64,000 nt of DNA from Octopus sinensis (Eukaryota), in assembly GCF_006345805.1 (NCBI RefSeq), contig NC_043024.1, positions 7,688,001 to 7,752,000 of the forward strand. Reading direction: 5' to 3'. The position numbers were made by a program, and so were the translations under genes. Positions 40,801-55,800 of the stretch are shown here, in pieces. Each line of letters begins with the position of its first letter. The stretch's first letter is position 1. Below the pieces are notes generated by a model. That model was not told the origin of the DNA. It made no database searches and worked only from the letters and a program-made list of their open reading frames with translations.

Positions 40801-43800
40801 GATGATGCCGTCATTGGCAGTTGACCACATTTTGAACTTTTGACAACAATAATTCAGGAAGAGAAAAATAGAAGAAGAAAAAACAGGTTAATAACTTATT
40901 TAAGCTGTTTCCCTTTCCCCCATCTATATCTGTCTACCACTATCTTCTCACACTCCCGTGAACTTATTTCTCCGCTCTCCCCTTCTTATATTCACATCCT
41001 TCCAACACCTATTTCTTTATTACCCACAAGGGGCTAAACACAGAGAGGACAAACAAGGACAGACATAGGGATTAAGTCGATTACATCAACCCCAGTGCGT
41101 AACTGGTACTTAATTTATCGACCCCGAAAGGACGAAAGGCAAAGTCGACCTCGACGGAATTTGAACTCACAAAGTAACAGCAGACGAAATACCTATTTCT
41201 TTATTACCCACAAGGGGCTAAACACAGAGGGGACAAACAAGGACAGACATAGGTATTAAGTCGATTACATCGACCCCAGTACGTAACTGGTACTTAATTT
41301 ATCGACCCCGAAAGGATGAAAGGCAAAGGCGACCTCGGCGGAATTTGAACTCACAACGTAACAGCAGACGAAATACCTATTTCTTTATTACCCACAAGGG
41401 GCTAAATATAGAGGGGACAAACAAGGACAGACATAGGTATTAAGTCGATTACATCGACCCCAGTGCGTAACTGGTACTTAATTTATCGACCCTGAAGGCA
41501 AAGTCGACCTCGGCGCAATTTGAACTCACAACGTAACAGCAGATGAAATACCGCTAAGCATTTTGCGGGGCATGCAAGCGGTTCTGCCAGCTCGCCGCAT
41601 TCACCATGGCACATTTTCACCACTGCCTCTCTTTTTCCAGCTGGTCAGAATCTCCAGTAATGACTTCTCAGTTGTTTGATCATCTGATCAGTCAAGCTCA
41701 TTGAATTCACATCCCAGTGGCTGAGAAATCCATTAACACATGTCCCCTTATTGTAATCTTCAGGCGAAATCTCCAAGACAGAATATGACAAAGCTGAATC
41801 CTTGCACTACTGTTTTACGCGTACTATCCATCCAACAGGCATCCTAACAGTTTCCATTTATCAATGTTTACTATTTCTTTACTACCCACAAGGGGCTAAA
41901 CACAGAAGGGACAAATGGATTAAGTCGATTATATCGACCCCAGTGCGTATCTGGTACTTATTTAATCAACCCCGAACGGATGAAAGGCAAAGTCGACCTC
42001 GGCAGAATTTGAACTCAGAACGTAACCGCATATGAAATACTGCCAAGCATTTCGCCCGGGGCTTGGCCCCACCCTGAAGCTATAGCAAAAAACACTTTTC
42101 CAAGACACCCCACAGTAGAATTTGAAACCCCAGTCATGTGATTGCTAAGTAAACTTCTTGACCATTTAGAGTAACTAAGAGTCTGTAATAAAAACCCAGG
42201 ATAATTACCTCATTAGGACAATTACGCCCCTCAGTTAATTAACCCCTCTCCAATATATTAAGAAGTTTTAAATCATTGTCTGTTTTCCTCAGGAAATTCG
42301 ATGATTGGCATCCGTGCTAGTGGAGCGCTAAGAGTACCATCCGAGCGTGATCGTTGCCAGAGCAACAAAGTGGCTTCCGTGCTGGTGGCACGTAAAAAGC
42401 ACCATTCGAGCGTGATCGTTACCTGTGTCACCTTACTGGCACGTGAACAAAACATTCGAGCGAGGTCGTTGCCAGTGTGGCTGGACTGGCTCCTGTGCAG
42501 GTGGCACGTAAAAAGCACCATTTGAGCATGGCCGTTGCCAGTAACACCTGACAGGCCCTCGTGCCGGTGACACATAAAAGCACCCATTACACTCTCAGAG
42601 TGGTTGGCATTAGGAAGGGCATCCAGCTGTAGAAACTCTGCCAGATCAAAATTGGAGCCTAGTGCAGCCATCTGGTTCGCCAGTCCTCAGTCAAATCGTC
42701 CAACCCATGCTAGCATGGAAAGCGAACGTTAAACGATGATGATGATGATATAGAAGTCCTTGGAGGAAGTAAATGTCCTAGATTCATCCCTTGATACCTT
42801 ACAGTGGGAACCAAACCAGCAATCTTGTGATTGCTAACATCTAAACCAATGATTCTCAACTATTTTTTACTCATGGACCCCTTTGGTTCCTATTTTATTC
42901 AGCGGGGAGGGGGCGAGACCCTCATAACTATTCAATGTCTAAAAACTACAATATTTTTATAATTAAATATTAGGAATTATATGAAAAAGCGTTTAAACAC
43001 TGTGTATTGTAGAAGCCTAAGCAATTTATTGCAGACTAGCACTATGACCCGGCAACACCGGGTCATAGTGCTACTGCATGCATATACAGCTGCGTGCATG
43101 CGCACATACATGCGAGTACTGTCCAAATCTCTGACCAATCACATACAGCTAGCTGGCATTCAATTGGCGTATCAAGTTTCGGGCATTTTGATTGGGATTT
43201 GGATAGAAAATTTTTTTTTTAAAGTCACTTCTATTGATTTTTTAATGGCTTTACAGGGTGACTTGGGAAATGTAAAGATGTGCACGACCACCCTTGGACG
43301 GTTTTGAATGACCATAGAAAGTGCGAGCCCTCTAACTGGAAAGTTGTGGATTTGTATAAAGGACACACACACAGACATTTTGCTGTTTATATAAAGAGAG
43401 ATTTGCGGGGTGACTGGGGAAATGTAAATATGTACACGACCACCCTTGGACGGTTTTGAATGACCATAGAAAGTGCGAGCCCTCTAACTGAAAAGTTGTG
43501 GATTTGTATAAAGGACACACACACAGACATTTTGCTGTTTATATAAAGAGAGATTTGCGGGGTGACTGGGGAAATGTAAAGATGTACAAGACCACCCTTG
43601 GACGGTTTTGAATGACCATAGAAAGTGCGAGCCCTCTAACTGAAAAGTTGTGGATTTGTATAAAGGACACACACACAGACATTTTGCTGTTTATATAAAG
43701 AGAGATTTGCGGGGTGACTGGGGAAATGTAAAGATGTACAAGACCACCCTTGACGGTTTTGAATGACCATAGAAAGTGCGAGCCCTCTAACTGAAAAGTT

Positions 43801-52800: not shown

Positions 52801-55800
52801 AGAAAGTGCGAGCCCTCTAACTGAAAAATTGTGGATTTGTATAAAGGACACACACACAGACATTTTGCTGTTTATATAAAGAGAGATTTGCGGGGTGACT
52901 GGGGAAATGTAAAGATGTACAAGACCACCCTTGGGCGGTTTTGAATGACCATAGAAAGTGCGAGCCCTCTAACTGAAAAATTGTGGATTTGTATAAAGGA
53001 CACACACACAGACATTTTGCTGTTTATATAAAGAGAGATTTGCGGGGTGACTGGGGAATGTAAAGATGTACAAGACCACCCTTGGGCGGTTTTGAATGAC
53101 CATAGAAAGTGCGAGCCCTCTAACTGAAAAGTTGTGGATTGTATAAAGGACACACACACAGACATTTTGCTGTTTATATAAAGAGAGATTTGCGGGGTGA
53201 CTGGGGAAATGTAAAGATGTACAAGACCACCCTTGGGCGGTTTTGAATGACCATAGAAAGTGCGAGCCCTCTAACTGAAAAATTGTGGATTTGTATAAAG
53301 GACACACACACAGACATTTTGCTGTTTATATAAAGAGAGATTTGCGGGGTGACTGGGGAAATGTAAAGATGTACAAGACCACCCTTGGGCGGTTTTGAAT
53401 GACCATAGAAAGTGCGAGCCCTCTAACTGAAAAATTGTGGATTTGTATAAAGGACACACACACGACATTTTGCTGTTTATATAAAGAGAGATTTGCGGGG
53501 TGACTGGGGAAATGTAAAGATGTACAAGACCACCCTGGGCGGTTTTGAATGACCATAGAAAGTGCGAGCCCTCTAACTGAAAAATTGTGGATTTGTATAA
53601 AGGACACACACACAGACATTTTGCTGTTTATATAAAGAGAGATTTGCGGGGTGACTGGGGAAATGTAAAGATGTACAAGACCACCCTTGGGCGGTTTTGA
53701 ATGACCATAGAAAGTGCGAGCCCTCTAACTGAAAAATTGTGGATTTGTATAAAGGACACACACACAGACATTTTGCTGTTTATATAAAGAGAGATTTGCG
53801 GGGTGACTGGGGAAATGTAAAGATGTACAAGACCACCCTTGGGCGGTTTTGAATGACCATAGAAAGTGCGAGCCCTCTAACTGAAAAGTTGTGGATTTGT
53901 ATAAAGGACACACACACAGACATTTTGCTGTTTATATAAAGAGAGATTGCGGGGTGACTGGGGAAATGTAAAGATGTACAAGACCACCCTTGGGCGGTTT
54001 TGAATGACCATAGAAAGTGCGAGCCCTCTACCTGAAAAGTTGTGGATTTGTATAAAGGACACACACACAGACATTTTGCTGTTTATATATAGAGAGATTT
54101 GCGGGGTGACTGGGGAAATGTAAAGATGTACAAGACCACCCTTGGGCGGTTTTGAATGACCATAGAAAGTGCGAGCCCTCTAACTGAAAAGTTGTGGATT
54201 TGTATAAAGGACACACACACAGACATTTTGCTGTTTATATAAGAGAGATTTGCGGGGTGACTGGGGAAATGTAAAGATGTACAAGACCACCCTTGGCGGT
54301 TTTGAATGACCATAGAAAGTGCGAGCCCTCTAACTGAAAAATTGTGGATTTGTATAAAGGACACACACACAGACATTTTGCTGTTTATATAAAGAGAGAT
54401 TTGCGGGGTGACTGGGGAAATGTAAAGATGTACAAGACCACCCTTGGGCGGTTTTGAATGACCATAGAAAGTGCGAGCCCTCTAACTGAAAAGTTGTGGA
54501 TTTGTATAAAGGACACACACACAGACATTTTGCTGTTTATATATAGAGAGATTTGCGGGGTGACTGGGGAAATGTAAAGATATGCACGACCACCCTTGGG
54601 CGGTTTTGAATGACCATAGAAAGTGCGAGCCCTCTAACTGAAAAATTGTGGATTTGTATAAAGGACACACACACAGACATTTTGCTGCCGTTTATATATA
54701 CAGAGATAAATTTTAACAACAAAATCTTATAAGGACACCCTGGGGCCATATTGGACCCCAGTTGAGAATCACTGATCAAAACCTTAAATTAACCCTTTAG
54801 CATTCAGACTACTTTGTCAAGTGTAATGCTTATCTATTCAAATTATATTTTGAATTAATCAAATATTATCTTGTAGTCTCAAGATTTAAATGATATAAAT
54901 CCTTAAAAATGTTTTAGCCCGAAGGCCGTGGCCATGCTGGGGCACCACCGCTGAATGAGCTACACTAATATGTGAATCCACCTCTGATACGTGGCACTTG
55001 ATCAACAAGGGAGTTCGATGCTGCTGCCCGCATCTGTGTCTCCTGTCGTGAGGTAGGTTCGTCTGAGACTCCCGACAAGAAGAGATCCAGTTTATCTTTA
55101 GAATAACATTGTTTTTTTTTGGAAGCACACACTCCGTCGGTTACAACGACGAGGGTTCCGGTTGATCTGAATCAACGGAACAGCCTGCTCGTGAAATTAA
55201 CGTGTAAGTGGCTGAGCACTCCACAGACACGTGTACCCTTAACGTGGTTCTCGGGGATATTCAGCGTGACACAGAGAGTGACAAGGCCGGCCCTTTGAAA
55301 TACAGGTACAACAGAAACAGGAAGTAAGAGTGAGAGAAAGTTGTGGTGAAAGAGTACAGCAGGGATCACCACCATCCCCTGCCGGAGCCTCGTGGAGCTT
55401 TTAGGTGTTTGCGCTCAATAGACACTCACAACGCCCGGTCTGGGAATCGAAACCGCGATCCTATGACCAAGAGTCCGCTGCCCTAACCACTGGGCTATTG
55501 TGCCTCCACAAATAACATTGTAGGGTGTGTGTGAAAGGTCAAATCTGGCTGGTTTAAATATAAAACAGGTAGAATATTTCAGCTAAATATGATCGGTTTG
55601 AATGCTAAAGGGTTAAGTAACTGTATGTATAACACATCAAAATAACAGATACCTGAGATCGCCACTGTTCCACAGCAACACCTGAGGTGCACAACACTAT
55701 ACACCTTTTTCTTACTGTACAGGCAGCTGTTACTCCAACTAGGGTCTTGCCAGCACCTACAGATAGAAGAATTTAGATGCTAAGACACAAAGAAACATAT

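Follow-up and report, generated by a model that had tools for sequence, protein, structure and literature searches.

Arrays in which many Helitron 5' ends precede a single 3' end have been found in 27 plant genomes and were ascribed to aberrant rolling-circle replication (Xiong, Dooner & Du 2016, Plant J; as reported in PMC12628747). As far as that report describes them, they are head-to-tail series of 3'-truncated Helitrons, each with a 5' end and all closed by one 3' end, that comprise a few to hundreds of copies. A related layout is known from the FoHeli elements of Fusarium oxysporum, in which several 5' termini are combined with one 3' terminus. In these elements, a short stretch of <200 bp is duplicated, from the 5' terminus on, ahead of an otherwise normal element, and self-insertion together with transposition from the leftmost 5' end was proposed (PMC5148889). 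In animals, satellite-like arrays are central in non-autonomous Helentrons (HINEs: Drosophila DINE-1 and DINE-TR1, Crassostrea Cg_HINE and pearl), rolling-circle elements with arrays of ~150-170-bp units, molluscs included, that are often in or near genes and whose arrays can expand into satellites (PMC4067079, PMC7492417, PMC8268682). Tandem Helitron sequences attributed to rolling-circle replication are also on record from Myotis, where the inner ones of the tandem Helibat copies are 3'-truncated according to the citation in PMC7492417, from Xenopus laevis (2-7 copies, most from Helitron2 minisatellites; PMC12001565), and from the subtelomeres of Hydractinia (PMC11934779) and the centromeres of Meloidogyne (PMC13404089), the latter two being loosely tied to defined termini. 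Octopus vulgaris is reported to have recently active Helitron families (PMC13282606). Here, we describe a multi-5'/single-3' array in an intron of the XPB/ERCC3 gene of Octopus sinensis. The window, that is the whole stretch of DNA analysed, comprises 64,000 nt (GCF_006345805.1, NC_043024.1, 7,688,001-7,752,000), and all coordinates are window-based. The element in question is a composite of 75 tandem 152-bp units and one unique 3' part and is very likely a non-autonomous Helitron whose 5' end was amplified in tandem.

The whole composite extends over 11,671 bp on the minus strand (43036-54706), and its limits are based on the alignment of its flanks with an empty site and on its TC and CTAG ends. 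Tandem Repeats Finder reported a period of 152 bp at 43256-45315 (13.6 copies, 97%) and at 45351-54687 (61.8 copies, 98%). The call was split in two because the unit at 45482-45223 is scrambled. When the consensus unit was mapped on the minus strand, 75 abutting units were obtained from 54706 down to 43250 (11,457 bp) with zero spacer, each opening with the Helitron 5' terminal sequence. Clean units make up 74 of the 75; they start with TCTCTCT(T/A)TATATAAAC and end with ...CACCCCGCAAA, and the remaining one is the scrambled and partly deleted sequence at 45223-45482 on the minus strand, a unit pair of 260 bp. The first, 5'-most unit (54552-54706, minus strand, 155 bp) directly abuts the flanking A at 54707. 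The 5' terminus of the element is thus the TC at 54705-54706, which follows this A (plus-strand T at 54707), so that the minus strand reads A|TCTCTG... at 54706; here and below, the bar marks a terminus or junction.

Downstream of the last unit (43250-43401, minus strand) follows the unique 3' part of the element (43036-43249, minus strand). It closes with a hairpin at 43037-43073, a perfect 16-bp stem with a 5-nt loop whose arms, TAGCACTATGACCCGG-N5-CCGGGTCATAGTGCTA, lie at 43037-43052 and 43058-43073. The stem stops 1 nt short of the terminus and overlaps the CTA of the terminal CTAG (43036-43039), after which the flank continues with T (plus-strand A at 43035). As folded DNA the hairpin has an energy of -26 kcal/mol (z = -6.5), a value that was reached by 0 of 200 shuffles. 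The 3' terminal motif has a single occurrence in the composite, which means that one 3' end closes the array. An earlier note on this DNA had proposed about 75 tandem Helitron 5' ends that feed one 3' end, and this is what the mapping of the units and of the 3' motif gave. The perfect 16-bp stem and the CTAG|T end stood as well; the unique part was put at ~215 bp there and is 214 bp long. Neither a second copy of the 3' part nor a free-standing copy of the unit is present elsewhere in the window. The basic form of the element was ~366 bp and consisted of a 152-bp left-end segment and a 214-bp right-end segment with hairpin and CTAG.

The boundaries of the composite can be read from the sequence into which it was inserted. 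This is an older element of ~257 bp that resembles a miniature inverted-repeat transposable element (MITE), has terminal inverted repeats and is split by the Helitron into a left arm (42847-43035, plus strand) and a right arm (54707-54774, plus strand). Its ends are of the form (C)A(A/G)TGATTCTCAACT. A paralogous copy on the minus strand (31767-32960) provides the empty site, in which ...TTGCACATAAATTTT... is uninterrupted (A at 31827, T at 31826). The joined flanks align with this paralog without a gap through the junction (TTGCAGA|TAAATTTT versus TTGCACATAAATTTT; in the longer extract, TTGCAGA|TAAATTTTAAC versus TTGCACATAAATTTTTAC), and the target core GCAGA|TAAAT corresponds to GCACATAAAT in the uninterrupted paralog. 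Therefore, 43036-54706 is a single insertion placed precisely between an A and a T, and host bases were neither duplicated at the target nor lost. That excision restores an A|T target without target-site duplication had been proposed before from inspection and is now borne out by the paralogous empty site. The paralog is itself interrupted by an unrelated insertion of an array of a short interspersed nuclear element (SINE), and an inverted array of the same SINE unit adjoins it at 32967-33609.

The composite has the traits of a canonical Helitron (Helitron1, HLE1): a 5'-TC, a 3' end of the CTRR type (CTAG), a 3' hairpin, and an A|T target that is not duplicated. Terminal inverted repeats are lacking: when the 5' 40 nt were compared in inverted orientation with the 3' 214 nt, the best match was equal to the mean of the shuffles. 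The same type of start had been noticed before at 63483, and indeed a solo non-autonomous Helitron of 367 bp is present there (63483-63849, plus strand), inserted between A and T, with termini related to those of the composite and an unrelated interior. Its ends read A|TCTTTATATATAAAAG...GCCGGGCGATACTGCTAG|T (...GCTAG|T). Over the 5' ~40 nt, the solo element and the unit match at 74% (E 0.003). The last 18 nt, GCCGGGnnATAnTGCTAG, are the same at 15 of 18 positions and stand at the exact terminus in both elements; if CTAG is left out, 11 of 14 anchored bases are equal, for which a binomial estimate gives p about 4e-5. Within the window, the 3' motif is found only at the two element termini and in the other arm of the hairpin. 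Shared termini together with an unrelated interior are the pattern expected of different non-autonomous families, which would be moved by related transposases. In the solo element, a significant hairpin is missing from the 3' end (z = 0.1 for 63790-63849), as is the complementary arm, despite the common 18-mer. The 16-bp hairpin of the composite therefore looks like a family-specific elaboration. An assignment to Helentron/HINE (Helitron2) elements was rejected: the composite has no subterminal inverted repeats, it sits in an A|T target, and its array begins at nucleotide 1 without a left module.

Variation between the units is not spread evenly along the array. In its interior, the units match the consensus at 98-100%, whereas the first and the last unit are relics with 94% and 95% identity, respectively. 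These two terminal units share G/C states: both have GGTCGTGCA where the interior units have GGTCTTGTA, and the first unit also retains TATATATAAAC. A C at alignment column 124 is found in the first and last units only, and a G at column 121 in these two and in four others. The first two units retain TATATATAAA, as in the 5' end of the solo element, whereas the interior units have TTTATATAAA, which is less close to the solo sequence. The main substitution, C/T at column 62, divides the array into 44 and 30 units and is arranged in blocks, with 20 runs observed and 36.7 expected (P = 4e-5). Relic ends, together with a swept interior and variants in blocks, are classically seen in arrays whose units underwent unequal exchange or conversion. 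From this it follows that, whatever created the array, a large share of its present units was added later, and we are rather confident that most of the 75 copies came from later exchange. The earlier note had mentioned later unequal exchange as a mere alternative to replication; for most of the present copies the relic terminal units and the variant blocks now speak in its favor. Otherwise, the differences between units are mostly 1-bp indels, possibly assembly noise.

Three other readings of the array were tried and rejected. The periods of 303 and 455 reported by Tandem Repeats Finder do not reflect a higher-order repeat, as the variants form irregular blocks without a period. The open reading frames in the array (47-162 aa) are frame-rotating repeat artefacts and not coding, and the one of 162 aa was without homologues in a protein search. 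The unit is not an RNA gene or a structured element either, since it had no Rfam match and no excess folding (z = 0.07). Exact look-ups of five open reading frames from the array and of both junctions gave no match, and exact-pattern scans of metagenome, prokaryotic-genome and viral contigs gave no match to the unit, the 3' part or the locus.

The position at which the amplified segment begins bears directly on its origin. In a locus of the form X-S-S-...-Y with no Helitron base in X, the duplicated S starts at nucleotide 1 of the element. Here, it does so with an ambiguity of 1 nt, because the flank and the unit both end in A. For a left breakpoint placed at random in the 366-bp element, such a coincidence would have a chance of roughly 2/366. 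In addition, the sequence context of the nick, A|TC, is formed anew at every unit junction (GCAAA|TCTC). The phase on nucleotide 1 favours a first duplication that was linked to the transposase nick, and we consider it probable that the first duplication was indeed linked to the terminus.

This leads to a model in two steps. The first duplication of the left end would have been coupled to A|TC, the site nicked by the transposase. An aborted or re-initiated rolling-circle event may be the most economical explanation: RepHel would nick at the 5' TC, ~152 nt would be synthesised or displaced, and the new 3'-OH would be joined again to the 5' TC end, to which the transposase is linked; replication of a truncated circle could have had the same result. 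The product would be the junction ...GCAAA|TCTCTC... and, with it, a new A|TC site. The event could have taken place at the resident locus, at the donor locus or in a circular intermediate. In the second step, which the pattern of variation shows, unequal exchange or slippage expanded and homogenised the interior to 75 copies and left the end units as diverged relics. Taken as a whole, this two-step account has a slightly better than even chance of being correct.

It is tempting to speculate that every unit is a working left end. RepHel would then nick A|TC repeatedly, prime strand displacement and rejoin the ends, and the array would grow at the resident locus. This is unlikely in our judgement. 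If it were true, circles of one 152-nt unit could be released by cuts at successive junctions, the transposase would directly make satellite DNA in the germ line of an animal within a housekeeping gene, and the array would be a launch pad with multiple origins that could give rise to daughter elements with variable numbers of units. Self-insertion of the Fusarium type was also considered and is disfavoured. It needs A|T at position 152|153, where the element reads A|G, since GCCATT comes after the final ...GTAAA of the last unit; a single later mutation could mask an original T at this position.

The array could also have been made before integration. According to the model of Xiong (2016), a circular intermediate without the 3' terminator would give a rolling-circle concatemer of 5' segments that ends in one complete copy and is then integrated, and exchange would only have homogenised what was already there. 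This accounts for the whole number of units, the intact terminal units, the precise insertion into A|T and the single 3' end, and it has a precedent in the plant arrays with few to several hundred copies, as reported in PMC12628747. However, the variant blocks and the relic ends demand much copying inside the array after its origin, and a large array at birth is then unnecessary. Moreover, the array is known at one locus in the window, and there is no microhomology for a deletion from position 153 to the CTAG|TC circle junction. A microhomology-mediated deletion in a circular intermediate was rejected on the same kind of ground, since by inspection no microhomology yields the observed unit junction. 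We regard an origin of the full array before integration as possible but doubtful. Alternatively, the transposase may have had no part in the amplification: a one-unit Helitron was inserted, its first 152 bp were duplicated by chance, and unequal crossing-over or slippage did the rest. Exchange within the array is clearly active, the genome readily forms arrays of 171-184-bp segments of transposable elements (six in the window) and an 895-bp tandem duplication, and a unit of ~150 bp is nucleosome-sized, like that of many satellites. The match to the 5' terminus would then be luck, with a left breakpoint that must hit within 1 nt of the first base, and microhomology is of no help because the flank (TTTA) and the unit end (CAAA) share one A only. 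Recombination or slippage alone is thus rather improbable as the sole source of the array.

The argument may also be turned around, with the satellite as the older partner. A 152-bp satellite with a motif like a left end would have been situated upstream of a Helitron 3' end, and the transposase would have mobilised the block from one of the monomers, which served as a new 5' end. Helitrons often hold captured tandem repeats (review PMC12628747; oyster and Xenopus cases), and, in its interior, the unit shows no relation to the solo element. This scenario is nevertheless highly improbable, since the first ~40 nt of the unit resemble the true 5' end of the solo Helitron, the last unit of the array is complete and directly abuts the unique 3' part, and, as mentioned above, a free-standing unit is missing from the rest of the 64-kb window. 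Finally, the copy number may be largely an artefact of the assembly, the real locus having far fewer units. The many single-base indels between units, the scrambled unit and a 100-N gap are signs of a noisy long-read assembly, and such assemblies often misstate the length of arrays. But relic ends, C/T blocks, rare shared variants and a unique scrambled unit are a position-specific structure unlike a collapsed or inflated consensus, and a much shorter array would still have multiple 5' ends and a single 3' end. An artefact of this extent seems very unlikely to us.

Several observations weigh against a Helitron whose terminal nick site seeded the array, the reading that we prefer. The unit end (GCAAA) is unlike the CTRR terminator, and the hairpin is atypical in that it abuts the terminus, compared with the usual distance of ~10 nt upstream. 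No RepHel partner was found within the window. The 5' similarity to the solo element is in low-complexity sequence (TATATA, GTGTGT), and the empty site is a paralog of ~80% identity and not an orthologous or allelic site. The composite is known from one locus in the 64-kb window, and transposition of the family, or of arrays as such, is thus hypothetical. The 1-bp indels between units and the 100-N gap in the window imply that the length and fine structure of the array may hold assembly error. Last, the window contains at least six short arrays of a 171-184-bp unit from the body of a SINE, in addition to the 895-bp tandem duplication; the arrays of the SINE unit mean that a generic, transposase-independent tandem amplification clearly operates in this genome.

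How does the octopus array compare to those described before? The plant arrays are, in the account given in PMC12628747, found mostly at centromeres, mixed with other repeats and in part decayed, whereas the array described here lies in the intron of an animal housekeeping gene, is very homogeneous and has boundaries that were verified by an empty site. In FoHeli there are one or a few duplications, compared to 75 units here, and position 152|153 is A|G in the octopus element. The arrays of HINEs are internal and flanked by a left and a right module that have subterminal inverted repeats, and A|T sites are not the target of Helentrons. As far as they are described in the sources cited, none of the arrays from Myotis, Xenopus, Hydractinia and Meloidogyne combines a phase on nucleotide 1 with an intragenic position and a verified empty site. 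The earlier note had presented the locus as an animal example of what was known from plants. This novelty was overstated, since Helitron-derived arrays are already on record from bat, Xenopus, Hydractinia, Meloidogyne, Drosophila and oysters. The layout is likewise known from plants and fungi, and no new class of element or mechanism is revealed. What distinguishes this array is that it is found in an animal, is intragenic, has 75 copies, is phased on nucleotide 1 and has an empty site; it is unusually well delimited.

This makes it an unusually clean specimen for the question of how transposons seed satellite DNA: the boundaries are exact, the start coincides with the nick site, and the ancestral end units are still readable. 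In addition, the intron that holds the array is well anchored and probably single-copy, and the array can therefore be typed by PCR or long reads across individuals and sister species, which renders a rolling-circle origin and unequal exchange testable at one locus.

The intronic location had been proposed before and was confirmed by exons of XPB/ERCC3 with splice sites on both sides of the array. XPB/ERCC3 is a DNA-repair gene that is in general single-copy and essential; for this genome, the earlier note's label of a single-copy essential gene was too firm. Stop-free segments on the minus strand encode peptides of the XPB/ERCC3 helicase and, when concatenated, match human XPB structures with an E of about 1e-137. 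The protein-database search with XPB gave matches from many eukaryotes and none from a close relative. The exon directly upstream of the array (55653-55756, minus strand) ends with ...VEQWRSQ and a GT donor, and the exon directly downstream (40764-40836, minus strand) begins with FKMWST... after an AG acceptor. The intron between them (40837-55652) has a length of 14,816 bp, of which the composite, oriented as the gene, makes up 79%. Apparently, 11.7 kb of Helitron array in sense orientation over four-fifths of an XPB/ERCC3 intron is tolerated. The composite is most likely a tolerated intronic passenger, and nothing points to a function for the host.

Other repeats in the window bear on how special the Helitron array is, since in this genome it is common to find nucleosome-sized units arrayed within transposable elements. 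A unit of 171-184 bp, the body of an abundant SINE-like repeat, forms at least six short arrays with 2.7-5 tandem copies each, at 1091-1577, 7417-8192, 14983-15693, 31864-32739, 32967-33609 and 41007-41552. The ~895-bp tandem duplication (96.6% identity) is at 36542-37437 and 37438-38494, between two XPB exons, and consists of intron sequence that contains a SINE. The 100-N gap is exactly of this length (10650-10749), is a scaffold gap and is flanked by microsatellites; repeat lengths should be taken with care.

Another XPB intron contains two adjacent minisatellites, 21214-21710 (17 bp x 29, 90%) and 21979-23954 (34 bp x 58, 94%, ~2 kb). A full-length match to 5S rRNA lies inside an XPB intron as well (18498-18616, minus strand), with 80.6 bits against a gathering score of 38 for the family; this may represent a 5S gene of the dispersed type, a pseudogene, or a 5S-derived SINE of which it would form the head. 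An interstitial telomere-like repeat, (AACCCT) x 8, is found at 9472-9519. GC-rich minisatellites with a unit of 61/62 bp (3.5-8 copies) are located at 17409-17887, 19392-19610 and 39118-39565, and each of them adjoins a copy of a scattered SINE of ~250 bp.

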